The notes beneath the pieces are model-generated. The model had not been told where the DNA came from and made no database searches. It saw only the letters and a program-made list of their open reading frames with translations. Source: Pecten maximus (taxonomy: Eukaryota). From it: 64,000 nucleotides of DNA. The stretch spans positions 23,126,001 to 23,190,000 of the forward strand of contig NC_047016.1 in NCBI RefSeq assembly GCF_902652985.1, in the 5' to 3' direction. A program made the position numbers and the translations under genes. Positions 12,138-40,780 of the stretch are shown piece by piece (position 1 is the first letter of the stretch; each line of letters begins with the position of its first letter).

Positions 12138-12194
12138 CCGATTCGTCAACGAAACAAGGGTCGGACTGTGTCTGCCGGTTTGTACGTACCGACA

Positions 12195-15058
12195 ATGGTG
12201 TACACAGTACGATTAGGTCTGATTTTAACCAGCGTAATTGTGCAAGGTATGGTATTTTTTTCTCATTTATCAAAAGGGTAATTAACACTTGCAATAATTA
12301 TTATCATTACTTTGTAAAACGGCTATATCTCGATTGGTACCAAGGATCAGGAAATTTACTTATTTGAGGGCCTGCTTTTACTGTTAACATAGGATCAAAA
12401 TGGGTTGTTTTAATTTCTTAATCCATAGTCAAAACGATCTCAATTAATTTTTTTTGTAAATACATTACAATGATTTTATTTCTTACTTGACATTTCTCGT
12501 AATATGTACCTATTTAAAATATCCATGAAATAAAACTATAATATCGGAACTGTCATACTGATATTCAAAAACAATTTCCGGGCACCATTTTATATATGTG
12601 TGTACAGTGATTATGTTATGACTCACGCCTGTATGTCAATCCGTAATAACGTTTCTGATTCCTTAATCTACAGTGGTCAGAGGATGTCCGAACGGTTGGA
12701 CAGCTTTCAATGATTCCTGCTATTTGATATCCTTTCATAAGGAAGATTGGTCAGCCGCGTCGGTAAATTATAGGACAACTCTAAATATTATTTATATCAT
12801 GTTAAACGACTTCAGATGTTCGAAAATATAATCTTATTTCGTTGCACAAAAATATGTAGTATCAAATATAACTTTACATATCAATATACATTTAACACTG
12901 TAATTTTATTGAAGGGCTGATCGGCCTATCTATCGAATTCATCTTTCACCATAAGTATTATCACCATGGATTGCATGTTCTGTTAATCAGTTTATATATG
13001 ACATGCAGGAAATAAAGAATGCTGATTTTGCACCAATCCATTAACAAATGATTCATTTACAGACTGATTGTCACTCCTACCATGGTTATCTTGCTGAGGT
13101 TTTAGATTCGAACGAGAATAACTTCCTGACTGAATTGGTCACACAATATCAAAGTAGGTTATGTTTCCATGTCTATTAAAATAATAAGATAATCGTTTTA
13201 CAGGAGTGAAATTTCGCTCCTGTTATACTTACAGAGTAAGACGTTTATTTTGTTTATATTTTTCGCATTGTCACCAAGAATGTGTTTAACTTGATATATG
13301 AAGAGATCATTACAATACAGCGGAAGCAGGAATCTTAGTTGCCTCCAGTGATGTAATATAACCATGCCCCTCTATTGTTTAGAACACGAAGACTACTGGT
13401 TGGGCGCTACCGACATATTTGTGGAGGGAGACTGGCGATGGAATGTAAATGGTCAACATTTAAAATACACCAACTGGCAACACGGGGAGCCAAACAATCT
13501 TCACTCCCATGGCGAGGACTGTTTAGCGGCCCACTATAGTAGCTCCCGCGTCCAATGGAGAGATTATGCATGCACGTCGAAACATTATTTCATTTGTGAG
13601 ACTAGGTATGTTGGTAGAACCGTTTTCTTGGAAAAGAACCATAGTAGTTCTCTGTTATAACATGTGTTTTAGAAAGGATAACACGTGTTTGTTATTCGCG
13701 CGTTTTAGGTCTTATTAAGATAAACATATAATTGTTGTTGGAAATAGTTGCATAAATACATGTATTTTCCTGTTTTTATTGCTTACAGGAAAATAAAACA
13801 ATATAAGTTTTAAAATAACCATAATAGACATATATCATGGTACAACTAAATGAAGCTTTATTCGTAACATATGTATTAAGCGAGGTTATCGTCAAAACTG
13901 TGATGTAGTTAACGAGGTTAACGCCAAAACTGTGATGTAGTAAGCGAGGTAATTGCTAACTTTATAGAAACACTGTAATGAGATCGCCATCATAATTATG
14001 AAGTAATTGGTGAGGTCTCCATCATAACTTTGAGTTAGTGACGTCATCATCAGAGCATTGATGTAATTAGTCTGGTTATCAACAGAACAGTGGTGTAGTT
14101 AGTGATGTTACTATCTGAACTGTGATGTAGTTTTTGATGATATCATCAGAACTGTGATTTAGTAAGATTATCTGACCTATGATGTAGTTTGTGGTGTTAT
14201 GATCTGAACTGTGATGTAGTTGTGAGGTTATCATCTGAACTGTGATGTAGTTATTGAGGTTACCATCTGAACTATGATGTAGTTAGTGAGATCATCATCT
14301 GAACTATGATGTAGCTTGTGGTGTTATTATCTGAACTGTGATGTAGTTTGTGGTGTTATTATTTGAACTGTGATGTAGTTTTTGATGTTATCATCTGAAC
14401 TGTGATGTAGTTAGTGAGGTTATCACCTGAACTGTGATGTAGTTTGTGGTGTTATTATTTGAACTGTGATGTAGTTAGTGAGGTTATCATCTGAACTGTG
14501 ATGTAGTTTGTGGTGTTATTATTTGAACTGTGATGTAGTTAGTGAGGTTATCATCTGAACTGTGATGTATTTAGTGAGGTTATCATCTGAACTGTGATGT
14601 AGCTAGCGAGGTTATCATCTGAATTGTGATGTAGTTAGCGATGTTAACATTTGAATTGTAATGTAGTTAGTAAGGTTATTATTTGAACTGTGATGTAGTT
14701 TGTGGTGTTATTATTTGAACTGTGATGTAGTTTGTGGGGTTATCATCTGAACTGTGATGTAGTTAGTAAGGTTATCATCTGAACTGTGATGTAGTTAGTA
14801 AGGTTATCATCTGAACTGTGATGTAGTTAGTGAGGTTATCAACTGAACTGTGATGTAGTTAGTAAGGTTATCATTTGAATTGTGATGTAGTTAGTGAGGT
14901 TATCATTTGATATTGGTGAAGATGTTGGATATAATTACCAAAGTTAGTTGGTAGATTGTATACTGATTACTGCTGTACGCACCATGGTTTTTAAACAGAA
15001 TCACATCCAATTTTGTCCTGTTTGTTTTTTCAGAGGCAGATGGATAACGTTCGGCTGA
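12195..15058 (+). CDS. C-type lectin gene 3 (159 aa, EPN/WRD)
   Basis: Exons 12195-12246, 12674-12762, 13063-13153, 13383-13605, 15034-15058 (GRWITFG*). Canonical splice sites, 480 nt in frame, six CTLD cysteines. Confidence 0.92.
13880..14910. repeat. 32-bp minisatellite, gene 3 intron 4
   Basis: Unit GAACTGTGATGTAGTTAGTGAGGTTATCATCT (starts at 14401 and 14433 are 32 apart). Confidence 0.95.
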
Positions 15059-16924
15059 ATGTCAATCAGTGCCCTTTACAAAAGTATATGGTATCATATA
15101 AATAATTTGTATTAGTAGTTTTTCCTGTAATATGTATTAACTCCAAACTTGTTTATATGCGTATGTTGAATAGACTGACGGCAAAAATCACAAAATAATA
15201 GATGTTATCTTGCTTAAAGTGCACCATTATTAAAGAATAAATAAAACAAATTTGAATCGCACACAATACATTGGAGTGGTATAGAATGCTTTGCATTTGA
15301 TGAAATGGAAGCGGGATATTTTACTTTAAATATATTTCAAAACATTGTCCTATGTACAAACTGAATTCAATAAATTATCTGTTTTTATAATAAACTGGTT
15401 AATGCCATTTTTCATTCATCAGTAATACAGTACTCTTTCATCAGGGGAAATCGTTCGTCAATAACCGACATAAGGTGCAAATACGCAGGGTGGAAAAAAC
15501 AAGCATGATACCATCAATAAAATGGGACTTTGAACACTCCATGGTCGCAACAAAGACCAGCAGAAATATATATACGTTTTTAAGAACGCAAAGAAAGAGT
15601 ATGACAAGCGACTGCAGTAGTCGAGTCAAAAACAATATAATTAGTTGAAATGCTTTAAGTCATTTACGTTAGAAACCGTCAGTGATTTTCTAGCTCAACA
15701 TGCATGTAATTATACATCCTAAAACGGAAATTAAATAATACGGGTTCAATACTACATCCACGTTCTATGTAGGAATTTAAAACATGGCAAGGGTTCCTAT
15801 CAGGTCCCTCAATCTAAGGAAGTAGTGTATGCGTTTTCACAATTACCGATATCTTTTTGAGGATATTGGATTTTATTTATTTCCCGAGATAAGAGAACAT
15901 CATCAGTAAAAGATTACTATTTATTCTCATTATTTTTGCTTAAGTACTGTGGCTCTGTATTTTTATGTGCGGTCACCAGAGCGGTTGTTCAAGAGAAGCA
16001 ACTCATAGGTTTTCAGAATGAAAATTAATCCATGTTGGCAATAGAATCAAAGAATATATTTGAATTTTTCCCACAACACATCGATTTCATACCTAAAAAT
16101 CGAACACTACAGTTTTTACTCAGCGGGACTGAGACTCACAAAAAGGATTTACCTGTGGTCCCATGACAACAAGTGCGTGTCAAATGAATATATTTATCCT
16201 TTCATTACAGAAGTCAAAGCATTGTAAGCCCGTGTTCACAACTCTCTGTATAGTATAAGCTGATCGCTAATTTATTTTTGATGAAGTCGAATATTGGTTA
16301 CATTGACATAAGAAAAACATTTAACTACAGACGAATGTATATATTAGGTTAATATAGATCGATATAAACATGTATTAACCGAAATCAAATCCTATACTTG
16401 CTTCATTATTTTTCTTATATTTTTGGAAAATCGAAGAGTGGGATGAATGATACAAAATTTAAAAGAAGTATTACCTTATACTGTACTCATTTATTTCAGA
16501 AAACAAAATAAAATGTATGACCTAACGATATAGATAAGATAATAACAATCCTACTCACACTTAATTTTCTATTTGATCACATAGTTAATACCGTGCATTT
16601 ACAAGAAGTTACTGTTCCCCAGTTTATATCAACACAGTTTATATCCATATTTTCTTTCTCGAAATTGTGTCAAATGACACTTCTGTGTTCTAACAGTGAA
16701 TGATTATGACCTTATTTGTCACGTACATGTGATAATGCGCAAAACGTATCATTTTCACGTCTTCAACGGAACGGAATCTGACCTCAGGTATCGTATGAAG
16801 AGTTTGACCGATGTGCTAGTCGCCGACTTTGTTTTTTGTCAAGTCCACATTGTCTGAAATGTTATCCACAATCTTTTTGATAGATTTGGAAAGATAGGCC
16901 AATTGGGTAGGTTGTAATGGAATA

Positions 16925-17042
16925 CGGACGGACAGAGGGAAAGACAGAAAGCCTCCAGTATACCCTCCCAAAAACACCCCCCTCCCCGTCCCACCCCGGT
17001 GAATCCTGTCGGGGGGGGGGGGGGGGGGGGGGGGGGGTATAA
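16925..17042 (+). mobile_element. Helentron/HINE-like element end (copies at ~23103-23223, ~29240-29355, ~35660-35782; related sequence at ~6385-6490)
   Basis: GGAC/GACA microsatellite followed by TATACCC...GGGGTATAA stem-loop; family assigned by recalled architecture only. Confidence 0.55.
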
Positions 17043-18113
17043 CTAGAGTGTTGGAAGTCTGTACTTCTATATAAAATCATAAGTTTTTCTCTACATTCAA
17101 TGGTATTCATAGTGGAATTTGCAACGAAAACGGCTTCTGTCGGAGCACACATGTCACATATACTGTAGTGCAAAAATAGCAATGTATTAGCCTAGCGTCA
17201 TATCTGAAAACCTTTTGTACACACCTTCCAACATTATGGTCTACTACTCGCTGTTGTCACAGTCATCCCAGAGGAGATATATCGCAAGGATGCTGACCCA
17301 AATATGGATGAAGCTATTAAGATAAAACAAAAAAGAGTATGATCAGAGATTTGTTAACCAAGTTTGTTTAATAATTCAGTTTCAAGACGTTTGACCTTGC
17401 TAACCAAGGTATATAAGTCCAAATCTGTTTACCTCCGGGAAATATCAGAAGCATAAACCTTTTTCGATTTCCATATTAAAAACCACCATTTTCATCTCCG
17501 GGGGTCGAAATAGAATGAATGTTTATGCTTTTAACTTGTCGAATCCGGTCAAACATATGTCCCTTTTGAGTGTTAAGACGTCTGTAAGGATTGCTTTTTT
17601 GCGCAATATATGTGAACCACATAAGCTATTTACGTTCTCAAATAACATGTTTTTTTTTCGCATATTTTACAAAAATGTACAAACAGCTTAGCAAATAACA
17701 TGTCATCATCAAGACTCATGGTTAGAAATGATACATACTAACAATTGATCAGGCTAATTTTGTCCAATTGTACCAGAGTAGTGATTTATATTTTTAGATA
17801 TCACTAGATTTGCTATTAAGATGACCCTTAAATTTGAAATACAAATAGTTGTTTAAAATCTTATTCTGTTTAATGCAGGGGTAAGAATTGACATTGTTGC
17901 ATTTCAGTAAGTCAGTTATTTTTTTTAAAACAGGACATTATGATACATCTGGTAATTCATCAAGTTGTGTTATTATAAAACAAAGAAATTATATCGTCTG
18001 GACATTGTGTTTTCATGGAACATGAACTGCAGAAGTGAGATAAGCCGTTATCTCCGATTCGTCAACGAAACAATAAGGGTCGGACGGTATCTGCTGGTTT
18101 GTACGAACCGACA

Positions 18114-21100
18114 ATGGTATACACAGTACGATTAGGTCTAGTTTTAACCAGCGTTATTGTGCAAGGTATGGTAATTATTTCTCATTTATCAAAAGGGTAA
18201 TTAACACTTTTAATTATTATTATCATTACTTCTTTAAAACGGCTATATCCCGATTGGTACAAAGGATCAGGAAAATCACTTTTTTGAGGAATTGCGTTTA
18301 CTGTTTACATATGATCATTTATTGGAGATTGGATGTGTGAATTAAATGGGTTTTTTTATTGAATTTTTAATCCATAATCAAAACGATCTCAATTCATGTT
18401 TTTTTGTTAAAACATTGCAATGATTTTAATTTGTTTTTTAATTGACATTTCCCGTAATATGTACCTATTTAAAATATCCATAAAATAAACCTATAATATC
18501 GGAACTGTGACACTGATATTAAAAAAAACAATTTCGGGACACCATTTTATATATGTGTGTACAGTGATTATGTTATGACTCACGCCTGTATGCCAATCCG
18601 TAATAACGTTTCTGATTCATTAATCTTCAGCGATCAGAGGATGTCCGAACGGTTGGACAGCTTTCAATGATTCCTGCTATTTGGTATCCTTTCATAAGGA
18701 AGATTGGTCAGCCGCGTCGGTAAATTATAGGACAACTCTAAATATTATTTATATCATGTTAAACGACTTCAGGTGTTCGAAAATATAATCTTATTTCGTT
18801 GCACAAAAATATGTAGTATCAAAAATAACTTTACAATTCAATATACATTTAAGACTATAATTTTATTGAAAGGGCTGATCGGCCTATCTATCGAATTCAT
18901 CTTTCACCATAAGTATTATTACCATGGATTGCATGTTCTGTTAATCAGTTTATATATGACATGCAGGAAATAAAGAATGCTGATTTTGCACCAATCCATT
19001 AACAAATGATTCATTTACAGACTGATTGTCACTCCTACCATGGTTATCTTGCTGAGGTTTTAGATTCGAACGAGAATAACTTCCTGACTGAATTGGTCAC
19101 ACAATATCAAAGTAGGTTATGTTTCCATGTCTATTAAAATAATAAGATAATCGTTTTACAGGAGTGAAATTTCGCTCCTGTTATACTTACAGAGTAAGAC
19201 GTTTATTTTGTTTATATTTTTCGCATTGTCACCAAGAATGTGTTTAACTTGATATATGAATAGATCATTACAATACAGCGGAAGCAGGAATCTTAGTTGC
19301 CTCCAGTGATATAATATAACCATGCCCCTCTATTGTTTAGAACACGAAGACTACTGGTTGGGCGCTACCGACATATTTGTGGAGGGAGACTGGCGATGGA
19401 ATGTAAATGGTCAACATTTAAATTACACCAACTGGCAACACGGGGAGCCAGACAATCGTCACTCCCATGGCGAGGACTGTTTAGCGGCCCACTATAGTAG
19501 CTCCCGCGTCCAATGGAGAGATTATGCATGCACGTCGAAACATTATTTCATTTGTGAGACTAGGTATGTTGGTAGAACCGTTTTCTTGGAAAAGAAACAT
19601 AGTAGTTCTCTGTTATAACATGTGTTTTAGAAAGGATAACACGTGTTTATTATTCGCGCGTTTTAGGTCTTAATGAGATAAACATATAAATGTTGTTGGA
19701 AATAGTTGCATAAATACATGTATTTTCCTGTTTTTATTGCTTACAGGAAAATAAAACAATGTAAGTTTTAAAATAACCATAATAGACATATATCATGGTA
19801 CAACTAAATGAAGCTTTATTCGTAACATATGTATTAAGCGAGGTTATCGTCAAAACTGTGATGTAGTTAACGAGGTTAACCTCAAAACTGTGATGTAGTA
19901 AGCGAGGTAATTGCTAACTTTGTAGAAACACTGTAATGAGGTCGCCATCATAATTATGAAGTAATTGGTGAGGTCTCGATCATAACTTTGATTGAGTTAG
20001 TGACGTCATCATCAGAGCACTGATATAATTAGTCTGGTTATCAACATAACAGTGGTGTAGTTAGTGATGATATCATCTGAACTGTGATTTAGTGTTTGAT
20101 GATATCATATGAGCTATGATGTAGTTAGTGAGGTTATCATCTGAACTGAGATGTAGTTTGTGGTGTTATTATTTGAACTGTGATATAGTTTTTGATGCTA
20201 TCATCTGAACTGTGATGTAGTTAGTGAGATTATCATCTGAACTATGATGTAGTTTGTGGTGTTATTATCTGAACTGTGATGTAGTTTTTGATGCTATCAT
20301 CTGAACTGTGATGTAGTTAGTGATGTTATTATCTGAACTGTGATGTAGTTTTTGATGATATCATATGAGCTATGATGTAGTTAGTGAGATTATCATCTGA
20401 ACTATGATGTAGTTTGTGGTGTTATTATCTGAACTGCGATGTAGTTTTTGATGCTATCATCTGAACTGTGATGTAGTTAGTGAGGTTATCATCTGAACTG
20501 AGATGTAGTTTGTGGTGTTATTATTTGAACTGTGATGTAGTTAGTGAGGTTATCATCTGAACTGTGATGTAGTTTGTGGTGTTATTATTTGAACTGTGAT
20601 ATAGTTAGTGAGGTTATCATCTGAATTGTGATGTAGTTAGGGATGTTATCATTTGAATTGTAATGTAGTTAGTGAGGTTATCATCTGAACTGTGATGTAG
20701 TTTGTGGTGTTATTATTTGAACTGTGATGTAGTTAGTGAGGTTATCATCTGAATTGTAATGTAGTTAGTTAGGTTATCATCTGAACTGTGATGCAGTTAG
20801 TAAGGTTATCATTTGAATTGGGATGTAGTTAGTAACGTTATCATCTGAACTGTGATGTAGTAAGTAAGGTTATCATCTGAACTGTGATGTAGTTAGTGAG
20901 GTTATCAACTGAACTGTGATGTAGTTAGTGAGGTTATCATCTGAACTGTGATGTAGTTTGTGCGGTTATCAACTGAACTGTGATGTAGTTAGTGAGGTTA
21001 TCATCTGAACTGTGATGTAGTTAGTGGGGTTATCATTTGCTATTGGTGAAGATGTTGGATATAATTACCAAAGTTAGTTGGTAGATTGTATACTGATTAC

Positions 21101-21188
21101 TGCTGTACGCACCATGGTTTTTAAACAGAATCACATCCAATGTTGTCCTGTTTGTTTTTTCAGAGGCAGATGGATAACGTTCGGCTGA
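18114..21188 (+). CDS. C-type lectin gene 4 (159 aa, EPD/WRD)
   Basis: Exons 18114-18165, 18631-18719, 19021-19111, 19341-19563, 21164-21188. Near-identical to gene 3; loop reads LNYTNWQHGEPDNR. Confidence 0.92.
19835..21040. repeat. 32-bp minisatellite, gene 4 intron 4
   Basis: Same unit as in gene 3, longer array. Confidence 0.95.
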
Positions 21189-24100
21189 ATGTCAATCAAT
21201 GCCCTTACAAAAGTATATGGTATCATATAAATAATTTGTATAGAAGTTTTTCCTGTAATATGTATTAACTCCAAACTTGTTTATATGCGTATGTTTAATA
21301 GACTGACGGCAAAAATCGCAAAATAATATATGTTATCTTGCTTAAATTATTAAAGAATGAATAAAACGAATTTGAATGATTCACAATACATTGGAGTGGT
21401 ATAGAATGCTTTGCCTTTTATGAAATGGAAGCGGGATATTTTACTTTAAATATATTTCAAAACATTGTCCTATGTACAAACTGAATTCAATAAATTATCT
21501 GTTTTTATAATAAACTGGTTAATGCCATTTTTCATTTATCAGTTATACAGTACTCAGTATCAGTTAATCCAATGCTATGCCGGTGGGATCAGGATGGTGA
21601 CCAAAATGTAAACTTTCATCAGGGGAAATCGTTGGTAAATAACCGACATAAGGTGCAAATACGCAGGGTGGAAAAAACAGTCATGATACCATCAATAAAA
21701 TGGGACTTTGAACACTCCATGGTCACAACAAAGACCAGCAGAAATCTATATACGTTTTTAAGAACGCAAAGAAAGAGTATGACAAGCGACTGCAGTAGTC
21801 GAGTCAAAAACAATATAATTAATTAAAATGCTTGTAATTCATTTACGACAGAAACCGTCAGTGATTTTCTAGCTCAACATGCATGTCATTATACATCCTA
21901 AAACGGAAATTAAATAATACGGGTTCAATACTACATCCACGTTCTATGTAGGAATTTAAAACATGGCAAGGGTTTCTATCAGGTCCCTCAATCTAAGGAA
22001 GTAGTGTATGCGTTTTCACAATTACCGATATCTTTTTGAGGATATTGGATTTTGTTTATTTCCCGAGATAAGAGAACACCATTAGTAAAAGATTACTATT
22101 TATTCTCATTATTTTTGCTTAAGTACTGTGGCTCTGTATTTTTATGTGCGGTCACCAGAGCGGTTGTTCAAGGGAAGCAACTCATAGGTTTTTAGAATGA
22201 AAATTAATCCATGTTGGCAGTAGAATCAAAGAATATATTTGAATTTTTCCCACAACACATCGATTTCATACCTAAAAATCGAACACTACAGTTTTTACTC
22301 AGCGGGACTGAGACTCACAAAAAGGATTTACCTGTGGTCCCATGACAACAAGTGCGTGTCAAATGTATATATTTATCCTTTCATTACAGAAGTCAAAGCA
22401 TTGTAAGCCCGTGTTCACAACTCTCTGTATAGTATAAGCTGATCGCTAATTTATTTTTGATGAAGTCGAATATTGGTTACATTGACCTAAGAAAAACATT
22501 TAACTACAGGCGAATGTATATATTAGGTTAATATAGATCGATATAAACATGTATTAACCGAAATCAAATCCTATAATTGCTTCATTATTTTTCTTATATT
22601 TTTGGAAAATCGAAGAGTGGTATGAATGATACAAAATTTAAAAGAAGTATTACCTTATACTGTACTCATTTATTTCAGGGGAAAAAAATTATGACCTAAC
22701 GATATAGATAAGATAATAACAATCCTACTCACACTTAATTATCTATTTGATCACATTGTTAATGTTAATACCGTGCATTTACAAGAAGTTACTGTTCCCC
22801 AGTTTATATTAACACAGTTTATATCCATATTTTCTTTCTCGAAATTGTGTCAAATGACACTTTTGTGTTCTAACAGTGAATAGTTATGACCTTATTTGTC
22901 ACGTACATGTGATAATGCGCAAAACATATCGTTTTCACGTCTTAAACGGAATGAAATCTGACCTCAGGTACCGTCTGAAGAGTTTGACCGTTGTGCTAGT
23001 CGCCGACATTGTTTTTGTCCAGTCCTAATTGTCTGAAATGTTATCCACAATCTTTTTGATAGATTTGGAAAGATAGGCCAATTGGGCAGGTTGTAATGGA
23101 ATACGGACGGACAGAGGGAAAGACAGAAAGACAGAAAGACTCCAGTATACCCTCCCAAAAACACACCCCCCCCCGTCCCCCCCCGGTGAATCCTGTTGGG
23201 GGGGGGGGGGGGGGGGGGTATAACTAGAGTGTTGGAAGTCTGTACTTTTATATACAATCAGTAGTTTTTCTCTATATTCCTTGGTATTCATGGTGTAATT
23301 TGCAACGAAAATGGCTTCTGTCGGAGCACACATGCAACATATACTGTAGTGAAAAATTTACAATGTATTAGCCTAGCGTCATATCTGAAAACGTTTTGTA
23401 CACACCTTCCAACATTATGGTCTACTACTCGCTGTTGTCACAGTCATCCTAGAGGAGATATATCGCAAGGATGCTGACCCAAATATGGATGAAGCTATTA
23501 GATAAAACAAAAAAGAGTATGATCAGAGATTTGTTAACCAAGTTTGTTTAATAATTCAGTTTCAAGACGTTTGACCTTGCTAACCAAGGTATATAAGTCC
23601 AAATCTGTTTACCTCCGGGAAATCTCAGAAGCATAAACCTTTTTCGATTTCCATATTAAAAACTACCATTTTCATCTCCGGGGGTCAAAATAGAATGAAT
23701 GTTTATGCTTTTAACTAAGACGTCTGTAAGGATTGCTTTTTTGCGCAATATATGTGAACCACATAAGCTATTTACGTTCTCAAATAACATGTATTTTTTC
23801 GCATATTTTACAAAAATGTACAAACAGCTTAGCAAATAACATGTCATCATCAAGACTCATGGTTAGAAATGATACATACTTACAATTGATCAGGCTAATT
23901 TTGTCCAATTGTACCAGAGTAGTGATTTATATTTTTAGATATCACTAGATTTGCTATTAAGATGACCCTTAAATTTGAAATACAAATAGTTGTTTAAAAT
24001 CTTATTCTGTTTAATGCAGGGGTAAGAATTGACATTGTTGCAGTGCAGTAAGTCAGTTATTTTTTTTTTAAACAGAACATTATGATACATCTGGTAATTC

Positions 24101-24255
24101 ATCAAGTTGTGTTATTATAAAACAAAGAAATTGTATCGTCTGGACATTGTGTTTTCATGGAACATGAACTGCAGAAGTGAGATAAGCCGTTATCTCCGAT
24201 TCGTCAACGAAACAATAAGGGTCGGACGGTATCTGCTGGTTTGTACGAACCGACA

Positions 24256-27200
24256 ATGGTGTACACAGTACGATTAGGTCTAGTTTTAACCAGCGTTATT
24301 GTGCAAGGTATGGTAATTATTTCTCATTTATCAAAAGGGTAATTAACACTTTTAATGATTATTATCATTACTTCTTTAAAACGGCTATATCCCGATTGGT
24401 ACAAAGGATCAGGAAAATTACTTTTTTGAGGAATTGCGTTTACTGTTTACATATGATCATTTATTGGAGATTGGATGTGTGAATTAAATGGGTTTTTTTA
24501 TTGAATTTTTAATCCATAATCAAAACGATCTCAATTCATGTTTTTTTGTTAAAACATTGCAATGATTTTAATTTGTTTTTTAATTGACATTTCCCGTAAT
24601 ATGTACCTATTTAAAATATCCATAAAATAAACCTATAATATCGGAACTGTGACACTGATATTAAAAAAAACAATTTCGGGACACCATTTTATATATGTGT
24701 GTACAGTGATTATGTTATGACTCACGCCTGTATGCCAATCCGTAATAACGTTTCTGATTCATTAATCTTCAGCGATCAGAGGATGTCCGAACGGTTGGAC
24801 AGCTTTCAATGATTCCTGCTATTTGGTATCCTTTCATAAGGAAGATTGGTCAGCCGCGTCGGTAAATTATAGGACAACTCTAAATATTATTTATATCATG
24901 TTAAACGACTTCAGGTGTTCGAAAATATAATCTTATTTCGTTGCACAAAAAAATGTAGTATCAAATATAACTTTACATATCAATATACATTTAACACTGT
25001 AATTTTATTGAAAGGGCTGATCGGCCTATCTATCGAATTCATTTTTCACCATAAGTATTATTACCATGGATTGCATGTTCTGTTAATCAGTTTATATATG
25101 ACATGCAGGAAATAAAGAATGCTGATTTTGCACCAATCCATTAACAAATGATTCATTTACAGACTGATTGTCACTCCTACCATGGTTATCTTGCTGAGGT
25201 TTTAGATTCGAACGAGAATAACTTCCTGACTGAATTGGTCACACAATATCAAAGTAGGTTATGTTTCCATGTCTATTAAAATAATAAGATAATCGTTTTA
25301 CAGGAGTGACATTTCGCTCCTGTTATACTTACAGAGTAAGACGTTTATTTTGTTTATATTTTTCGCATTGTCACCAAGAATGTGTTTAACTTGATATATG
25401 AAGAGATCATTACAATACAGCGGAAGCAGGAATCTTAGTTGCCTCCAGTGATATAATATAACCATGGCCCTCTATTGTTTAGAACACGAAGACTACTGGT
25501 TGGGCGCTACCGACATATTTGTGGAGGGAGACTGGCGATGGAATGTAAATGGTCAACATTTAAAATACACCAACTGGCAACACGGGCAGCCAAACAATCT
25601 TCACTCCCATGGCGAGGACTGTTTAGCGGCCCACTATAGTAGCTCCCACGTCCAATGGAGAGATTATGCATGCACGTCGAAACATTATTTCATTTGTGAG
25701 ACAAGGTATGTTGGTAGAACCGTTTTCTTGGAAAAGAAACATAGTAGTTCTCTGTTATAACATGTGTTTTGGAAAGGATAACACGTGTTTATTATTCACG
25801 CGTTTTAGGTCTTAATGAGATAAACATATAAATGTTGTTGGAAATAGTTGCATAAATACATGTATTTTCCTGTTTTTATTGCTTACAGGAAAATAAAACA
25901 ATGTAAGTTTTAAAATAACCATAATAGACATATATCATGGTACAACTAAATGAAGCTATATTCGTAACATATATATTTGGCGAGGTTATCGTCAAAACTG
26001 TGATGTAGTTAACGAGGTTAACGCCAAAACTGTGATGTAGTAAGCGAGGTAATTGCTTGTAGAAATACTGTAATGAGGTCGCCATCATAATTATGAAGTA
26101 ATTGGTGAGGTCTCCATCATAACTTTGATTGGGTTAGTGACGTCATCATCAGAGCATTGATGTAATTAGTCTGGTTATCAACAGAACAGTGGTGTAGTTA
26201 GTGATGTTATTATCTGAACTGTGATGTAGTGTTTGATGATATCATATGAGCTATGATGTAGTTAGTGAGGTTATCATCTGAACTGAGATGTAGTTTGTGG
26301 TGTTATTATTTGAACTGTGATATAGTTTTTGATGCTATCATCTGAACTGTGATGTAGTTAGTGAGATTATCATCTGAACTATGATGTAGTTTGTGGTGTT
26401 ATTATCTGAACTGTGATGTAGTTTTTGATGCTATCATCTGAACTGTGATGTAGTTAGTGATGTTATTATCTGAACTGTGATGTAGTTTTTGATGATATCA
26501 TATGAGCTATGATGTAGTTAGTGAGATTATCATCTGAACTATGATGTAGTTTGTGGTGTTATTATCTGAACTGCGATGTAGTTTTTGATGCTATCATCTG
26601 AACTGTGATGTAGTTAGTGAGGTTATCATCTGAACTGAGATGTAGTTTGTGGTGTTATTATTTGAACTGTGATGTAGTTAGTGAGGTTATCATCTGAACT
26701 GTGATGTAGTTTGTGGTGTTATTATTTGAACTGTGATATAGTTAGTGAGGTTATCATCTGAATTGTGATGTAGTTAGGGATGTTATCATTTGAATTGTAA
26801 TGTAGTTAGTGAGGTTATTATTTGAACTGTGATGTAGTTTGTGGTGTTATTATTTGAACTGTGATGTAGTTAGTGCGGTTATCATCTGAACTGTGATGTA
26901 GTTAGTAAGGTTATCATCTGAACTGTGATGTAGTTAGTAAGGTTATCATTTGAATTGGGATGTAGTTAGTAACGTTATCATCTGAACTGTGATGTAGTAA
27001 GTAAGGTTATCATCTGAACTGTGATGTAGTTAGTGAGGTTATCAACTGAACTGTGATGTAGTTAGTAACGTTATCATCTGAACTGTGATGTAGTTAGTGA
27101 GGTTATCAACTGAACTGTGATGTAGTTAGTAACGTTATCATCTGAACTGTGATGTAGTTAGTGGGGTTATCATTTGCTATTGGTGAAGATGTTGGATATA

Positions 27201-27325
27201 ATTACCAAAGTTAGTTGGTAGATTGTATACTGATTACTGCTGTACGCACCATGGTTTTTAAACAGAATCACATCCAATGTTGTCCTGTTTGTTTTTTCAG
27301 AGGCAGATGGATAACGTTCGGCTGA
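24256..27325 (+). CDS. C-type lectin gene 5 (159 aa, QPN/WRD)
   Basis: Exons 24256-24307, 24773-24861, 25163-25253, 25483-25705, 27301-27325. Loop reads LKYTNWQHGQPNNL. Confidence 0.92.
25980..27175. repeat. 32-bp minisatellite, gene 5 intron 4
   Basis: Same unit; variant order largely shared with gene 4. Confidence 0.95.
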
Positions 27326-30300
27326 ATGTCAATCAATGCCCTTACAAAAGTATATGGTATCATATAAATAATTTGTATTAGAAGTTTTTCCTGTAATATG
27401 TATTAACTCCAAACTTGTTTATATGCGTATGTTTAATAGACTGACGGCAAAAATCGCAAAATAATATATGTTATCTTGCTTAAATTATTAAAGAATGAAT
27501 AAAACGAATTTGAATGATTCACAATACATTGGAGTGGTATAGAATGCTTTGCCTTTTATGAAATGGAAGCGGGATATTTTACTTTAAATATATTTCAAAA
27601 CATTGTCCTATGTACAAACTGAATTCAATAAATTATCTGTTTTTATAATAAACTGGTTAATGCCATTTTTCATTTATCAGTAATACAGTACTCAGTATCA
27701 GTTAATCCAATGCTATGCCGGTGGGATCAGGATGGTGACCAAAATGTAAACTTTCATCAGGGGAAATCGTTGGTAAATAACCGACATAAGGTGCAAATAC
27801 GCAGGGTGGAAAAAACAGGCATGATACCATCAATAAAATGGGACTTTGAACACTCCATGGTAACAACAAAGACCAGCAGAAATCTATATACGTTTTTAAG
27901 AACGCAAAGAAAGAGTATGACAAGCGACTGCAGTAGTCGAGTCAAAAACAATATAATTAGTTAAAATGCTTTAAGTCATTTACGATAGAAACCGTCAGTG
28001 ATTTTCTAGCTCAACATGCATGTCATTATACATCCTAAAACGGAAATTAAATAATACGGGTTCAATACTACATCCACGTTCTATGTAGGAATTTAAAACA
28101 TGGCAAGGGTTTCTATCAGGTCCCTCAATCTAAGGAAGTAGTGTATGCGTTTTCACAATTACCGATATCTTTTTGAGGATATTGGATTTTATTTATTTCC
28201 CGAGATAAGAGAACATCATCAGTAAAAGATTACTATTTATTCTCATTAATTTTGCTTAAGTACTGTGGCTCTGTATTTTTATGTGCGGTCACCAGAGCGG
28301 TTGTTCAAGGGAAGCAACTCATAGGTTTTTAGAATGAAAATTAATCCATGTTGGCAGTAGAATCAAAGAATATATTTGAATTTTTCCCACAACACATCGA
28401 TTTCATACCTAAAAATCAAACACTACAGTTTTTACTCAGCGGGACTGAGACTCACAAAAAGGATTTACCTGTGGTCCCATGACAACAAGTGCGTGTCAAA
28501 TGTATATATTTATCCTTTCATTACAGAAGTCAAAGCACTGTAAGCCCGTGTTCACAACTCTCTGTATAGTATAAGCTGATCGCTAATTTATTTTTGATGA
28601 AGTCGAATATTGGTTACATTGACCTAAGAAAAACATTTAACTACAGGCGAATGTATATATTAGGTTAATATAGATCGATATAAACATGTATTAACCGAAA
28701 TCAAATCCTATAATTGCTTTATTATTTTTCTTATATTTTTGGAAAATCGAAGAGTGGTATGAATGATACAAAATTTAAAAGAAGTATTACCTTATACTGT
28801 ACTCATTTATTTCAGTGGAAAAAAATTATGACCTAACGATATAGATAAGATAATAACAATCCTACTCACGCTTAATTATCTATTTGATCACATAGTTAAT
28901 GTTAATACCGTGCATTTACAAGAAGTTACTGTTCCCCAGTTTATATTAACACAGTTTATATCTATATTTTCTTTCTCGAAATTGTGTCAAATGACACTTT
29001 TGTGTTCTAACAGTGAATAGTTATGACCTTATTTGTCACGTACATGTGATAATGCGCAAAACGTATCGTTTTCACGTCTTAAACGGAATGAAATCTGACC
29101 TCAGGTACCGTCTGAACAGTTTGACCGTTGTGCTAGTCGCCGACATTGTTTTTGTCCAGTCCACATTGTCTGAAATGTTATCCACAATCTTTTTGATAGA
29201 TTTGGAAAGATAGGCCAATTGGGCAGGTTGTAATGGAATACGGACGGACAGAGGGAAAGACAGAAAGACAGAAAGACTCCAGTATACCCTCCCAAAAACA
29301 CACCCCTCCCCGTCCCACCCCGGTGAATCCTGTTGGGGGGGGGGGGGGGGTATAACTAGAGTGTTGGAAGTCTGTACTTTTATATACAATCAGTAGTTTT
29401 TCTCTATATTCCTTGGTATTCATGGTGTAATTTGCAACGAAAATGGCTTCTGTCGGAGCACACATGCAACATATACTGTAGTGAAAAATTTACAATGTAT
29501 TAGCCTAGCGTCATATCTGAAAACGTTTTGTACACACCTTCCAACATTATGGTCTACTACTCGCTGTTGTCACAGTCATCCTAGAGGAGATATATCGCAA
29601 GGATGCTGACCCAAATATGGATGAAGCTATTTAGATAAAACAAAAAAGAGTATGATCAGAGATTTGTTAACCAAGTTTGTTTAATAATTCAGTTTCAAGA
29701 CGTTTGACCTTGCTAACCAAGGTATATAAGTCCAAATCTGTTTACCTCCGGGAAATATCAGAAGCATAAACCTTTTTCGATTTCCATATTAAAAACCACC
29801 ATTTTCATCTCCGGGGGTCGAAATAGAATGAATGTTTATGCTTTTAACTTGTCGAATCCGGTCAAACATATGTCCCTTTTGAGTGTTAAGACGTCTGTAA
29901 GGATTGCTTTTTTGCGCAATATATGTGAACCACATAAGCTATTTACGTTCTCAAATAACATGTATTTTTTTGCATATTTTACAAAAATGTACAAACAGCT
30001 TAGCAAATAACATGTCATCATCAAGACTCATGGTTAGAAATGATACATACTAACAATTGATCAGGCTAATTTTGTCCAATTGTACCAGAGTAGTGATTTA
30101 TATTTTTAGATATCACTAGATTTGCTATTAAGATGACCCTTAAATTTGAAATACAAATAGTTGTTTAAAATCTTATTCTGTTTAATGCAGGGGTAAGAAT
30201 TGACATTGTTGCAGTGCAGTAAGTCAGTTATTTTTTTAAAAACAGGACATTATGATACATCTGGTAATTCATCAAGTTGTGTTATTATAAAACAAAGAAA

Positions 30301-30425
30301 TTATATCGTCTGGACATTGTGTTTTCATGGAACATGAACTGCAGAAGTGAGATAAGCCGTTATCTCCGATTCGTCAACGAAACAATAAGGGTCGGACGGT
30401 ATCTGCTGGTTTGTACGAACCGACA

Positions 30426-33300
30426 ATGGTGTACACAGTACGATTAGGTCTAGTTTTAACCAGCGTTATTGTGCAAGGTATGGTAATTATTTCTCATTTA
30501 TCAAAAGGGTAATTAACACTTTTAATGATTATTATCATTAATTCTTTAAAACGGCTATATCCCGATTGGTACAAAGGATCATGAAAATTACTTTTTTGAG
30601 GAATTGCGTTTACTGTTTACATATGATCATTTATTGGAGATTGGATGTGTGAATTAAATGGGTTTTTTTTATTGAATTTTTAATCCATAATCAAAACGAT
30701 CTCAATTCATGTTTTTTTGTTAAAACATTGCAATGATTTTAATTTTTTTTTTAATTGACATTTCCCGTAATATGTACCTATTTAAAATATCCATAAAATA
30801 AACCTATAATATCGGAACTGTGACACTGATATTAAAAAAACAATTTTGGGACACCATTTTATATATGTGTGTACAGTGATTATGTTATGACTCACGCCTG
30901 TATGCCAATCCGTAATAACGTTTCTGATTCATTAATCTTCAGCGATCAGAGGATGTCCGAACGGTTGGACAGCTTTCAATGATTCCTGCTATTTGGTATC
31001 CTTTCATAAGGAAGATTGGTCAGCCGCGTCGGTAAATTATAGGACAACTCTAAATATTATTTATATCATGTTAAACGACTTCAGGTGTTCGAAAATATAA
31101 TCTTATTTCGTTGCACAAAAATATGCAGTATCAAAAATAACTTTACAATTCAATATACATTTAAGACTATAATTTTATTGAAAGGGCGGATCGGCCTATC
31201 TATCGAATTCATCTTTCACCATAAGTATTACTACCATGGATTGCATGTTCTGTTAATCAGTTTATATACGACATGCAGGAAATAAAGAATGCTGATTTTG
31301 CACAAATCCATTAACAAATGATTCATTTACAGACTGATTGTCACTCCTACCATGGTTATCTTGCTGAGGTTTTAGATTCGAACGAGAATAACTTCCTGAC
31401 TGAATTGGTCACACAATATCAAAGTAGGTTATGTTTCCATGTCTATTAAAATAATAAGATAATCGTTTTACAGGAGTGAAATTTCGCTCCTGTTATACTT
31501 ACAGAGGAAGACGTTTATTTTGTTTATATTTTTCGCATTGTCACCAAGAATGTGTTTAACTTGATATATGAAGAGATCATTACAATACAGCGGAAGCAGG
31601 AATCTTAGTTGCCTCCAGTGATATAATATAACCATGCCCCTCTATTGTTTAGAACACGAAGACTACTGGTTAGGCGCTACCGACATATTTGTGGAGGGAG
31701 ACTGGCGATGGAATGTAAATGGTCAACATTTAAATTACACCAACTGGCAACACGGGCAGCCAAACAATCTTCACTCCCATGGCGAGGACTGTTTAGCGGC
31801 CCACTATAGTAGCTCCCGCGTCCAATGGAGAGATTATGCATGCACGTCGAAACATTATTTCATTTGTGAGACTAGGTATGTTGGTAGAACAGTTTTCTTG
31901 GAAAAGAAACATAGTAGTTCTCTGTTATAACATGTGTTTTAGAACGGATAACACGTGTTTATTATTCGCGCGTTTTAGGTCTTAATGAGATAAACATATA
32001 ATTGTTATTGGAAATAGTTGCATAAATACATGTATTTTCCTAATTTTATTGCTTACAGGAAAATAAAACAATGTAAGTTTTAAAATAACCATAATAGACA
32101 TATATCATGGTACAACTAAATGAAGCTTTATTCGTAACATATGTATTAAGCGAAGTTATCGTCAAAACTGTGATGTAGTTAACGAGGTTAACGCCAAAAC
32201 TGTGATGTAGTAAGCGAGGTAATTGCTAACTTTGTAGAAACACTGTAATGAGGTCGCCATCATCATTAGGAAGTAATTGGTGAGGTCTCCATCATAACTT
32301 TGATTGAGTTAGTGACGTCATCATCAGAGCATTGATGTAATTAATCTGGTTATCAACAGAACAGTGGTGTAGTTGTGAGGTTATCTTCTGAACTGTGATT
32401 TAGTAAGATTATCTGAACTATGATGTAGTTTGTGGTGTTATCATCTGAACTGTGATGTAGTTAGTGAGATTATTATCTGAACTATGATGTAGTTAGTGAG
32501 ATTATTATCTGAACTTTAATGTAGTTCGTGATGTTATTATTTGAACTGTGATGTAGTTTGTGGTGTTATTATTTGAACTGTGATGTAGTTCGTGGTGTTA
32601 TTATTTGAACTGTGATGTAGTTATTGAGGTTATCATCTGAACTATGATGTAGTTTGTGGTGTTATTATTTGAACTGTGATGTAGTTATTGAGGTTATCAT
32701 CTGAACTGTGATGAATTTAGCGAGGTTATCACCTGAACTGTGATGTAGTTAGTGAGGTTATCATCTGAACTGTGATGTAGTTTGTGGTGTTATTATTTGA
32801 ACTGTGATGTAGTTAGTGAGGTTATCATCTGAACTGTGATGAATTTAGCGAGGTTATCATCTGAACTGTGATGTAGTTAGCGGGGTTATCATCTGAATTG
32901 TGATGTAGTTAGCGATGTTATCATTTGAATTGTAATGTAGTTAGTGAGGTTATTATTTGAACTGTGATGTAGTTTGTGGTGTTATTATTTGAACTGTGAT
33001 GTAGTTAGTGCGGTTATCATCTGAACTGTGATGTAGTTAGTAACGTTATCATCTGAACTGTGATGTAGTTAGTAAGGTTATCAACTGAACTGTGATGCAG
33101 TTAGTAAGGTTATCTTTTGAATTGTGATGTAGTTAGTGAGGTTATCATTTGAAATTGGTGAAGATGTTGGATATAATTACCAAAGTTAGTTGGTAGATTG
33201 TATACTGATTACTGCTGTACGCACCATGGTTTTTAAACAGAATCACATCAAATTTTGTCCTGTTTTTTTTTTCAGAGGCAGATGGATAACGTTCGGCTGA
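30426..33300 (+). CDS. C-type lectin gene 6 (159 aa, QPN/WRD)
   Basis: Exons 30426-30477, 30943-31031, 31333-31423, 31653-31875, 33276-33300. Loop reads LNYTNWQHGQPNNL. Confidence 0.92.
32150..33150. repeat. 32-bp minisatellite, gene 6 intron 4
   Basis: Same unit. Confidence 0.95.
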
Positions 33301-36847: not shown

Positions 36848-39800
36848 ATGGTGTACACAGTACGATTAGGTCTAGTTTTAACCAGCGTTATTGTGCAAGG
36901 TATGGTAATTATTTCTGAATAATGAGCCATTATCTGTACTATGTAATACAGCTAAATATCAATTGGAAGCAGGATCTGGATTTGAGGACTAGTTAATACT
37001 GTTTTCATAGCATTTTATTGGACATTTTATGACCGTTTTTATTTCAAACCCATTATCAAACGATCTCGAATAGTATTATTTTGTATATACATTGTATTTA
37101 TTTCTTAATTGATATTTGCTTTTTTAAAATTTACAAAACCTAATTGAAATTGTGACACTGCTATTATTAAAAAATGCTTTTTCCGGGCAGTGCTTTATAT
37201 ATGTGTGTACAGTGACTATGTTATGTCTTATGTCTGTATGTCAATCTGTAATAACGTTTCTGATTCCTTAATCTACAGTGATCAGAGGATGTCCGAACGG
37301 TTGGGCAGCATCCATTGATTCCTGCTATTTGGTATCCTTTCATAAGGAAGATTGGTCAGCCGCGTCGGTAAACTATAGCTTAAGCTCGTGTTTTGTGTAA
37401 TTTTTGAATTTTGATAACTCGGGTGAAAGAAATACCATATACATCAACCACGATTTTGTTTGTGACCTGTTTCTACCACAATAGAAAGTCTATTATGAGA
37501 ATGACTTGAACTTTTTTGTGTCAACGTATGTTATTTCACAATATTAGGTGTGGTATAAGGATATATTACCTAAATTAGAATGCCGCTAATTAATATGCAA
37601 AACTGATCATTTCGGAAATGTATAGAAATATATATATAAAAAAATCATTGCAATTAATTAGCAACTTTAGTCTTTTCTAATCATTAAATTGAAAGAAGTC
37701 TATGTGTAAATTTTCAAAAATATGAAATATAGACCACGTGATTCAAATAGTCCCGGTCAAAGTTCATCGTTTCAATAAATCAAAATGCATTAACGGAGTG
37801 TTATTCAACAGTCGTAATGGTTATTTCATGCCATGGGATTGGAATTAAACCCTCCTATTATTGTAGAAATAATGTAAAATGACTTAAATTGTTCTAAACT
37901 AATAATCTTATTTTGTGGCTTAAAAAAGAAAACGGTAAGTTAAATATTAACTTTGAATTTCAATATGAATTTAAGACTGTACGTTTATTTAAGGGCTGTT
38001 CGGCCTCTATCAAAGTCATCTTTGGACATAAGTATTACTTTCATGGTTGGGTGTTCTGAACAATTAGGTTTATATGTGAAATAGGGAACAGAAGAAAACT
38101 GATTTCTCACCAATCCAATAACAAAAACAAATGATTCATTTACAGACAAAGTGTCACTCCTACCATGCTTATCTTGCTGAGGTTGGAGATTCAAATGAGG
38201 ATAATTTCTTGAAAGAATTGGTCGCTAAACATCAAAGTAGGTTGCGTTTTCATTTCTTTAATAGGATAATCGTTTAACAGAAGTGCGGTCGAAGTTATAC
38301 TAACAGAAGAAGACGTTTATCTTATTCTTATTTCACGCATTGACAAACAATGTATTTCACCTGATAGATAAAAAGATTAATACAATATATCGCGACCAGG
38401 AATCTTAGTTCCCTTAACTGATATAATGGTATCATGTCTATTGTCTAGCACACGAAGACTACTGGTTGGGCGCTACCGACATATTTGTGGAGGGAGACTG
38501 GCGATGGAACGAACATGATCAGCGTTTGAATTATACCAACTGGCACCACGGGGAGCCAAACAATCTTCACTCCCATGGCGAGGACTGTTTAGCAACTCGT
38601 TTCAGTGGTTCAAGCTTCCAATGGAGAGATTATGAATGCACGTCAGAACGTTATTTTATTTGTGAGACAGGGTATGTTAACATAGTAAACCCTAGCTTTC
38701 TGTTATAACGTTTATTTTAGGAATCATAGCAAGTGTTTAATAACCACGTGTGGTCATCAGATTACATAATATTTCTTGTTGAAAATATTTGCTGAAGTAC
38801 ATGTATGTTCCTGTCGTTATTGCTCAAATGAAAATAAAACAACGTTAGTTTTATCATATCCATAATAGACATATCTTATGAAACAATAAAGCGAAGCTTT
38901 ATCCTTAACTGATGTAGTAAGCGAGGGTATTGTCAGGACTGTGATGTAGTAAGTGAGGGTTTTATCGGGACTGTGATGTAGTAAGCGAGGGTATTGTCAG
39001 GACTGTGATGTAGTTAGCGAGGGTATTGTCAGGACTGTGATGTAGTAAGCGAGGGTATTGTCAGGACTGTGATGTAGTAAGCGAGGGTATTGTCAGGACT
39101 GTGATGTAGTTAGCGAGGGTATTGCCAGGACTGTGATGTAGTAAGCGAGGGTATTGTCAGGACTGTGATGTAGCAAGCGAGGGTATTGTCAGGACTGTGA
39201 TGTAGTAAGCGAGGGTATTGTCAGGACAGTGATGTAGTTAGTGAGGGTATTGTTGGGACTGTGATGTAGTAAGCGAGGGTATTGTCAGGACTGTGATGTA
39301 GTAAGCGAGGGTATTGTGAGGACTGTGATGTAGTTAGCGAGGGTATTGTCAGGACTGTGATGTAGTAAGCGAGGGTATTGTCAGGGACTGTGATGTAGTA
39401 AGCGAGGGTATTGTCAGGACTGTGATGCAGCAAGTGAGGGTATTGTCAGGACTGTGATGCAGTAAGCGAGGGTATTGACAGGACTGTGATGTAGTTAGTG
39501 AGGGTATCGTCGGAACTGTGATGTAGTTAGCGAGGGTATGGTCAGGACTGTGATGTTGTAAGCGAGGGTATGGTCAGGACTGTGATGTAGTTAGTAGGGG
39601 TATTGTTGGGACTGTGATGTAATAAGCGAGGGTATTGTCAGGACTGTGATGTAGTAAGCGAGGGTATTGTCAGGACTGTGATGTAGTTAGCGAGGGTATT
39701 GTCAGGACTGTGATGTAGTAAGCGCGGGTATCGTCGGGACTGTAATGTAGTTAGCGAGGGTATTGTCAGGACTGTGATGTAGTTTGCGAGGGTATTGTCA

Positions 39801-40780
39801 GGACTGTGATGCAGTAAGCGAGGGTATTGTCAGGACTGTGATGTAGTTAGTGAGGGTATTGTCAGGACTGTGATGTAGTAAGCGAGGGTATTGTCAGGAC
39901 TGTGATGTAGTTAGCGAGGGTATTGTCAGGACTGTGATGTAGTTAGCGAGGGTATTGTCAGGACTGTGATGTAGTTAGCGAGGGTATCGCTAAATGTGAT
40001 GCAATAACACTGTAGAGAGGTTATCAACAGGACTGCCATGTAGTGAATAAGGTTATCATCTGAACTATGATGTAGTTAGTGAGGTTATCATCTGAACTAT
40101 GATGTAGATTAGTGAGATTATCAACTGAACTATGATGTAGTTTGTGATGTTATTATCTGAACTGTGATGTAGTTTGTGGTGTTATCATCTGAACTGTAAT
40201 GTAGTTAGTGAGATTATCAACTGAACTGTGATGTAGTTTGTGGTGTTATCATCTGAACTGTGATGTAGCTAGCGAGGTTATCATCTGAAATGTGATGTAG
40301 TTTGTGGTGTTATTATCTGAACTGTGATGTAGTTTGTGGTGTTATCATCTGAACTGTGATGTAGTTTGTGGTGTTATCATCTGAACTGTAATGTAGTTAG
40401 TGAGATTATCATCTGAACTGTAATGTAGTTAGTGAGGTTATTATCTGAACTGTGATGTAGTTTGTGGTGTTATCATCTGAACTGTAATGTAGTTAGTGAG
40501 GTTATTATCTGAACTGTGATGTAGTTTGTGGTGTTATTATTTGAACTGTGATGTAGGTTTTGATGTTATCATCTGAACTGTGATGTAGTTAGTGAGGTTT
40601 TCGTCTGAACTGTGTGTAGTTAGTGAAGTTATCATTTGATATTGGTGAAGATGTTGGATATTCTTACCAAAATTAGTTTTTGGATCATATACTGATATAC
40701 CATTTATGCATTAAGTTTTAACCATCACATCAATATTGTCCTTTTTGTCTTTCAGAGGCCGGTGGATAACGTTCGGTTGA
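36848..40780 (+). CDS. C-type lectin gene 7 (159 aa, EPN/WRD), diverged paralogue of genes 3-6
   Basis: Exons 36848-36899, 37279-37367, 38146-38236, 38449-38671, 40756-40780 (GRWITFG*). 480 nt in frame. Confidence 0.9.
37378..37875. mobile_element. Non-autonomous DNA element in gene 7 intron 2
   Basis: Shares TGTGACCTGTTTCTACCACAATAG and ATGCCGCTAATTAATATGCAAA with ~45560-46170, and the latter motif with ~53540-54040; absent from intron 2 of genes 3-6. Confidence 0.7.
38910..40640. repeat. Compound 32-bp minisatellite, gene 7 intron 4
   Basis: Block A 38910-39990 GGACTGTGATGTAGTAAGCGAGGGTATTGTCA; block B 40050-40640 has the unit of genes 3-6. Confidence 0.95.

Follow-up and report, generated by a model that had tools for sequence, protein, structure and literature searches.

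Four neighbouring genes of a tandem C-type lectin array in the king scallop Pecten maximus encode proteins that are 96–97% identical to one another, and the amino acid replacements that separate them are gathered at the primary sugar/Ca2+ site of the lectin domain. These genes (genes 3–6) lie in the window G000:C2:23126001-23190000, i.e. the whole stretch of 64,000 nucleotides of chromosome DNA that we analysed from an assembly of 918 Mb. They are young genes for secreted C-type lectins with a single domain and about 142 residues in the mature form. The best reading of the locus, in which we place about even confidence, is site-directed diversification of a lectin array that is kept similar by exchange between its copies. 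Gene conversion or unequal crossing-over would hold the units near-identical, the protein differences that persist would lie in the long loop forming the primary Ca2+/sugar site, and the most likely meaning of these differences would be that the copies have begun diverging in ligand preference. The array would then be a small set of glycan receptors on a single scaffold, in which exchange between copies would have reshuffled at least one change at a glycosylation sequon (K/N) against one change in the sugar-site motif (E/Q).

Differences among the four copies

The original prediction, made for the interval from the first base of exon 4 of gene 3 to the last base of exon 4 of gene 6 (13383-31875), had claimed that exon 3 is identical in genes 3–6, that exon 4 has five replacement and two silent sites, that the sugar-specificity motif reads EPN, EPD, QPN and QPN in the order of the genes, and that three of the five replacements lie in or beside this xPx motif. 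All these readings were borne out: exon 3 (19021-19111 in gene 4 and its counterparts) is invariant in all four copies, exon 4 has exactly these seven variable sites (Table 1), the codons give the motif series, and the replacements in question are those at residues 113, 115 and 117. Two of them occupy the first and the third position of the motif, and L/R is located two residues beyond it. Written as residue 105, motif, residue 117 and residue 133, the haplotypes of genes 3, 4, 5 and 6 are K-EPN-L-R, N-EPD-R-R, K-QPN-L-H and N-QPN-L-R. The same five replacements are present in the four corresponding RefSeq proteins, and they are the sole differences among the proteins of genes 4–6; gene 3 additionally differs in one signal-peptide residue (V/I) and three exon-2 residues (AI/VV, V/I).

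The K/N replacement, which is located eight residues upstream of the motif, is a sequon switch: AAT (N) in genes 4 and 6 makes an N-Y-T glycosylation sequon, and AAA (K) in genes 3 and 5 abolishes it. When gene 7 is used as an outgroup, N105, E113, N115 and L117 are polarised as ancestral; R/H is not polarised, the residue 133 of gene 7 being Ser.

The original prediction leaned on the rule that EPN goes with mannose-type and QPD with galactose-type sugars, which is a vertebrate paradigm. Gene 3 has EPN, and gene 4 (EPD) and genes 5 and 6 (QPN) are hybrids outside the EPN and QPD classes. When matched by motif register, E/Q113, N/D115 and L/R117 of P. maximus fall on positions 185, 187 and 189 of rat mannose-binding protein A (MBP-A); the three replacements thus coincide, as far as this register tells, with the three point-change positions of the mannose-to-galactose switch of MBP-A, and this coincidence is among the new observations of the present study. 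It makes the case somewhat stronger than originally claimed, in that the third loop change is also on a known specificity position.

Probable exchange between copies

The relationships among the four copies shift along the unit. Six sites, namely five in intron 2 and the K/N site, group gene 3 with gene 5 and gene 4 with gene 6; one site, E/Q, located only 22 bp beyond K/N, groups gene 3 with gene 4 and gene 5 with gene 6; and one site in intron 4 groups gene 3 with gene 6 and gene 4 with gene 5. These 2:2 groupings are mutually incompatible and include at least two switches, a pattern by which concerted evolution is recognised, and all four combinations of K/N and E/Q are present among the four copies. 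Exchange is a more parsimonious explanation than recurrent mutation, because other sites back both groupings at K/N and E/Q. Outside the exons, no difference between genes 5 and 6 was seen in several 300-bp segments of the spacer, where gene 4 is 5–6% different; gene 3 shows strong divergence in the part upstream of exon 2 and near-identity in the part downstream of it; and gene 7 is the reverse of gene 3, having a spacer like those of genes 4–6 and being 11–25% diverged from exon 1 onwards. Judged from the sequences, such sharp boundaries and shifting relationships point to gene conversion or unequal crossing-over. A 32-bp minisatellite found at the same place of intron 4 in genes 3–7 (23–54 units with 82–91% matches and a strong G-over-C skew on the + strand; Table 1) could favour misalignment and exchange among the units.

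The proposal that the array acts as a recombining repertoire was therefore upheld in one part, the marks of exchange between copies, and the repertoire itself is still conjecture. The related proposal that an exchange between genes 4 and 5 could create QPD stood in so far as QPD occurs in the syntenic cluster of Argopecten irradians mentioned below; on the other hand, the tract boundary must fall in the 5-bp interval 19446-19450, and no QPD form was found in the contigs of four public sequencing runs, which is a weak test. No donor for the D/R pair of gene 4 was found in the window or in the genome, in which the 18-mer with both changes occurs once. A more far-reaching view, which we consider improbable, is that of a germline shuffling system, in which short conversion tracts would recombine the equivalents of positions 185, 187 and 189 and the nearby sequon, the combinations, including QPD, would vary between individuals and populations, and homogenisation would be resisted by balancing or diversifying selection.

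Placement of the replacements and the possibility of neutral drift

The replacements depart from chance in where they lie, at the primary sugar/Ca2+ site, and not in their rate. In a simulation in which five random replacements were placed over the long loop (38 codons), exon 4 or the mature protein, both motif positions were struck by chance with P=0.013, 0.003 and 0.001, respectively, and positions 113, 115 and 117 were all struck with P=0.001, 0.00017 and 2.5e-5, with the caveat that the third position (117) was recognised post hoc. With positions weighted according to how variable they are in other family members, these values drop further. None of the 180 sites of exons 2 and 3 taken together is variable among genes 4–6, a lower level than in the introns (P=0.005) and in exon 4 (P=0.019). 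We infer that binding differs between the copies and that selection rather than chance retains the differences; positive or diversifying selection is suggested by the placement, not proven.

A serious rival, which we hold to be possible rather than probable, is neutral drift in a weakly constrained long loop after recent duplication or homogenisation, in which case the placement at the motif would be coincidental and functionally inconsequential. Many of the observations that weigh against site-directed diversification are just those in favour of this rival. In genes 4–6, exon 4 is variable at 7 of 223 sites (3.1%) and the flanking introns at 29 of 817 (3.55%; P=1.0), and variability at the level of introns is to be expected if an unconstrained loop drifts neutrally. 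The ratio of replacement to silent changes per site (dN/dS) in exon 4 is about 0.56 within the array (5 replacements in 178.8 sites and 2 silent changes in 40.2 sites) and about 0.26 against gene 7, and a test of the McDonald–Kreitman type was not significant (P=0.67); the caution of the original prediction that selection is not demonstrated accordingly holds, the exon-wide dN/dS being below 1. Positions 105, 117 and 133 are among the most variable of the family (6, 6 and 9 parsimony changes, respectively), and the Asn of the WND motif is not conserved. The replacements number only five, two of which (N/D and L/R) occur in the same copy at a distance of 7 bp and possibly arose in a single mutational event, and a look-elsewhere effect has to be reckoned with since the motif prompted the choice of the finding. 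In addition, the EPN/QPD rule predicts specificity poorly in bivalve lectins, whose motif often disagrees with the measured specificity (a 2025 review, PMC12842671), and changing EPD to QPD in CfLec-3 of Chlamys farreri left the binding of pathogen-associated molecular patterns (PAMPs) unchanged (PMC4432315), which speaks against a simple mannose/galactose reading.

Against neutral drift, the placement probabilities for the motif pair and for the 113/115/117 triad stay low even when only the 38 loop codons are free to change, the family shows fair conservation at positions 113 and 115 (3 and 2 changes, respectively), and the long-term dN/dS of 0.26 indicates that exon 4 is normally constrained. 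As a control for the look-elsewhere effect, we examined 51 other C-terminal exons of C-type lectin-like domains (CTLDs) in the genome and found three pairs at 89–96% DNA identity, none of them near-identical or tandem. Separately, one young lectin pair of the genome (G000:C35:111113-111616 and G000:C13:14958822-14959325), which is 95.8% identical in DNA and differs at 7 of 77 residues, has the motif proline among its differences (KPS versus KTS); one member is on an unplaced scaffold, and the pair may perhaps be allelic.

Support from public sequencing runs

Read support was examined in assembled Logan contigs of public runs, which collapse variants and lose minor paths, and in which the absence of a form is thus not shown. 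A K-E-N contig of exon 4 was found in two DNA runs from different studies, and a K-Q-N contig, having the gene 5 form over the equivalents of 19342-19485, in one RNA run (X6), with L at 19458 deduced from difference counts in both cases; E/Q has therefore been seen outside the assembly. Read support was expected for the variants and was found for E/Q and for the gene-6-specific intron variants, which recur in three DNA runs from three studies, but not for D115 and R117 of gene 4, whose N-E-D-R form was not among the public contigs shown (variants being collapsed there), a further point that weighs against site-directed diversification.

These data bear on the possibility of an assembly or allelic artefact, i.e. 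haplotypes of fewer copies laid in tandem, or alleles or polishing errors (notably D115 and R117 of gene 4), which would make the motif series partly a polymorphism. The divergence between copies (1.5–4%) is within the allelic range of bivalves as given by general knowledge, the alternating grouping of genes 3 and 5 against genes 4 and 6 would suit a falsely doubled two-gene block, and the forms shown by public contigs are K-E-N in DNA and K-Q-N in RNA. However, the window is free of N, and the units, of 5958, 6142 and 6170 bp, are unequal not only in size but also in their flanks and in the copy number of the minisatellite; the upstream half of gene 3 is unlike that of gene 5, and the gene 4 spacer differs from that of gene 6 as described above. 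With the gene-6-specific variants recurring in independent studies, with no additional copy or haplotig in the assembly, and with contigs that collapse variants, an artefact appears to have little probability.

Apart from these variants, the contigs of three DNA runs link position 19221 back to 18208 across an insert of 10 other letters, flanked on either side by about 255 letters that do not match; the link is probably due to a repeat elsewhere that shares two 21-nt pieces (18208-18228/19200-19221) with the window.

Lectin fold and sugar-site chemistry

That the copies are true C-type lectin domains was confirmed by profile, PDB match and fold comparison. The full exon 4 alone scores 43–47 bits against Pfam Lectin_C (PF00059; cut-off 22.6), CTLDs in PDB match down to E 5e-20 for single domains, and the RefSeq proteins of the four genes (P0001 and P0003-5) have the cysteines of the long-form CTLD (C22, C33, C50, C124, C141 and C149) plus the YWLGATD core, with a disulfide pairing that would be as in the CTLD family. 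An AlphaFold2 model from a 36-sequence alignment has a mean predicted local distance difference test score (pLDDT) of 83.7; it replaced a first model from a 14-sequence alignment, which was dropped for the loop because of pLDDT below 50 at residues 87–119. Foldseek placed the model on the carbohydrate-recognition domains (CRDs) of SRCL, mincle and the bivalve lectin codakine with template modelling (TM) scores of 0.82–0.93, normalised to the target, and a root-mean-square deviation (rmsd) of 1.7–2.0 Å, and it superposes also on the CRDs of DC-SIGNR and CD23 (TM 0.8–0.9, rmsd about 2 Å).

Four of the five ligand positions of site 2 are kept (E/Q113, N/D115, E122 and D138), as is the cis-Pro. 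The Asn of WND is replaced by Arg (WRD) in genes 3–7, and the site thus departs from the canonical five-ligand site 2; this position has changed six times in 14 sequences, R, M, S, D, K, I, V, E and N occurring in the scallop subfamily. Seen from these residues, binding may depart from the textbook geometry, which also weighs against site-directed diversification. It leads to the further alternative that the proteins are not sugar receptors, but serve protein or mineral binding (as perlucin in nacre) or other Ca2+-independent binding, the tripeptide then being uninformative on glycans. Besides WRD, this view can refer to bivalve C-type lectins that bind outside the canonical site (SPL-1/2, and ScCTL-2, which is Ca2+-independent; PMC12842671), and the name "perlucin-like" of the P. 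maximus proteins is no more than an automatic RefSeq name. We regard the view as very improbable, considering the retained ligand positions and cis-Pro, the nearest solved folds, which are those of sugar-binding CRDs, and the fact that functional bivalve C-type lectins often have WSD, WHD or WFD instead of WND, many of them being Ca2+-dependent binders (PMC12842671).

Gene models and other features of the window

A tblastn search of the window with one RefSeq protein gave at least 10 C-type lectin genes in tandem, all on the + strand, whose site-2 motifs are, in order, EPS, EPN, EPN, EPD, QPN, QPN, EPN, EPN, EPN and DPN. A protein search with the exon-4 open frame retrieved four "perlucin-like" P. 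maximus RefSeq proteins of 159 residues (XP_033731874, XP_033731875, XP_033731876 and XP_033731878) and also a 117-residue neighbour protein. The window sequence was searched exon by exon, and full-length analyses were done with RefSeq proteins P0001 and P0003-P0005.

Genes 3–6 have five exons each, not four; the first exon (18114-18165 in gene 4) encodes the signal peptide, and exon 4 is not final, being followed after intron 4 by an exon 5 of 25 nt (RGRWITFG and stop). RNA contigs join the exons of gene 4 (18165>18631, 18719>19021 and 19111>19341), and the contig end at 19563 runs into exon 5; these contigs thus bear out the annotated splicing and show transcription of one copy or more. The exon ends of gene 3 were transferred via anchors from these gene-4 junctions. 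In the RefSeq isoform X2 (P0001), the signal-peptide exon of gene 3 (12195-12246; LGLILTSV) is joined to exons 2–5 of gene 4 (18631-21188), omitting the remaining exons of gene 3; the isoform is a prediction that is chimeric or due to read-through, or else it reflects genuine trans-unit splicing.

Downstream of the four copies, gene 9 (EPN/WRD; within 49230-56882) has lectin exons at 52280-52384 and 54229-54429 according to tblastn. The spacer between genes 6 and 7 contains about 470 bp found only there (33458-33924), which are insertion-like and make the unit 6.8 kb. Tracts rich in G/C homopolymers, with a length varying by unit, are present in the spacers at 16865-17076, 23044-23257, 29104-29389 and 35592-35816, and they translate as long proline runs on the minus strand.

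Table 1. Lectin genes, variable sites of exon 4, motif codons and minisatellites in the window. Variable sites are in gene-4 coordinates with bases in the order of genes 3, 4, 5 and 6; residues are numbered on the 159-residue protein.
Feature	Position	Strand	Details
Gene 3 (XP_033731874, P0004)	12195..15058	+	EPN, K105; exons 12195-12246, 12674-12762, 13063-13153, 13383-13605, 15034-15058
Gene 4 (exons 2-5 of P0001/XP_033731875)	18114..21188	+	EPD, R117; exons 18114-18165, 18631-18719, 19021-19111, 19341-19563, 21164-21188
Gene 5 (XP_033731876, P0003)	24256..27325	+	QPN, K105, H133; exons 24256-24307, 24773-24861, 25163-25253, 25483-25705, 27301-27325
Gene 6 (XP_033731878, P0005)	30426..33300	+	QPN, N105; exons 30426-30477, 30943-31031, 31333-31423, 31653-31875, 33276-33300
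Gene 7 (P0002)	36848..40784	+	EPN/WRD; outgroup; exon 4 87% identical in DNA
Variable site	19360		GGGA; silent
Variable site	19423		ATAT; K/N105
Variable site	19445		GGCC; E/Q113
Variable site	19451		AGAA; N/D115
Variable site	19458		TGTT; L/R117
Variable site	19506		GGAG; R/H133
Variable site	19561		TTAT; silent
Gene 3 Ca2+-site-2 tripeptide	13487..13495	+	EPN; GAG CCA AAC
Gene 4 tripeptide	19445..19453	+	EPD; GAG CCA GAC; CGT (R) of the L/R codon at 19457-19459
Gene 5 tripeptide	25587..25595	+	QPN; CAG CCA AAC
Gene 6 tripeptide	31757..31765	+	QPN; CAG CCA AAC
K/N codon	19421..19423	+	counterparts 13463, 25563, 31733
R/H codon	19505..19507	+	three residues before the WRD tryptophan; CAC (H) in gene 5 only, 25647-25649
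32-bp minisatellite, intron 4 of gene 3	14033-14910	+	
32-bp minisatellite, intron 4 of gene 4	19984-21036	+	
32-bp minisatellite, intron 4 of gene 5	26133-27173	+	
32-bp minisatellite, intron 4 of gene 6	32296-33153	+	
32-bp minisatellite, intron 4 of gene 7	38910-40639	+	

Significance and comparison with other lectins

Innate recognition in bivalves depends on large, fast-changing lectin families, and to our knowledge one can seldom tell which residues are the first to change after a duplication, or whether the EPN/QPD rule applies in bivalve lectins. Taken together, the four genes are a near-isogenic series of natural origin (EPN, EPD and QPN, with and without the nearby sequon, all on the WRD background), which provides ready-made natural mutants for testing this rule in a bivalve lectin. 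The locus exemplifies, in nature, a theme already known from bivalve immunity, with near-identical neighbours that differ almost only at the textbook sugar-choosing residues. Galactose-switch mutants of rat MBP-A with QPDW(G) have reportedly been described by Drickamer, and by Iobst and Drickamer in 1994. Changes at 185 and 187 plus Trp189 turned the preferred sugar of MBP-A to galactose (PMC8235521, PMC2704901). In spite of the shared positions, the scallop genes differ from MBP-A in several respects: no copy has the full QPD, residue 117 is Leu or Arg and not His or Trp, the glycine-rich loop is missing, Asn205 is replaced by Arg, and the overall identity is about 30%.

The genes are already annotated in RefSeq, and it has been well described that bivalve C-type lectins are diverse in motif and have expanded in tandem (PMC10140915, PMC12842671). 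Giant multi-CTLD proteins dominated the result of an exhaustive search of representative sequences, in which no usable orthologues were obtained. In A. irradians, a syntenic tandem cluster (CM084267.1, 24534782-24559274, reversed) contains five lectin genes with EPN/WDD, EPD, QPD/WSD, EPN/WMD and EPN/WRD, of which the EPD copy has in-frame stops (cluster positions 2910-7444); the 32-bp minisatellite was not found in this cluster, which has instead a 116-bp repeat at cluster positions 12140-12617. QPD, QPS, DPN and EPD are all found in the scallop subfamily, the motif having changed repeatedly.

The single-CRD lectins of other bivalves (CfLec-1/-2 and AiCTL-1, -5 and -7) resemble the P. maximus proteins in being secreted, in having about 160 residues with one long-form CTLD, in showing EPN, EPD, QPN and QPD variants, and in often having the Asn of WND replaced; AiCTL-1, for example, is listed as QPD/WRD (PMC12842671). 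Their genes, too, belong to tandem families that have expanded (PMC10140915). What distinguishes P. maximus from this group is that, apart from the site-2 loop, four side-by-side copies hardly vary in the mature domain. CfLec-3, with CRDs carrying YPT, EPD and EPN, is another scallop lectin with a single N/D difference in the motif, and its effect on binding has been found by mutagenesis: changing EPD to EPN gains mannan binding, and changing EPN to EPD loses it (PMC4432315). On account of this mutagenesis, it is the N/D difference of gene 4 for which a real effect has the best precedent, and the importance of a route to QPD is doubtful. The CRDs of CfLec-3 are in one protein, whereas the P. 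maximus copies are separate near-identical genes. With other tandem arrays under concerted evolution the P. maximus array shares near-identity with sharp boundaries, mosaic relationships and all four combinations at sites 22 bp apart; it differs from them in that the remaining differences cluster at the ligand site, the other exons being fully homogenised.

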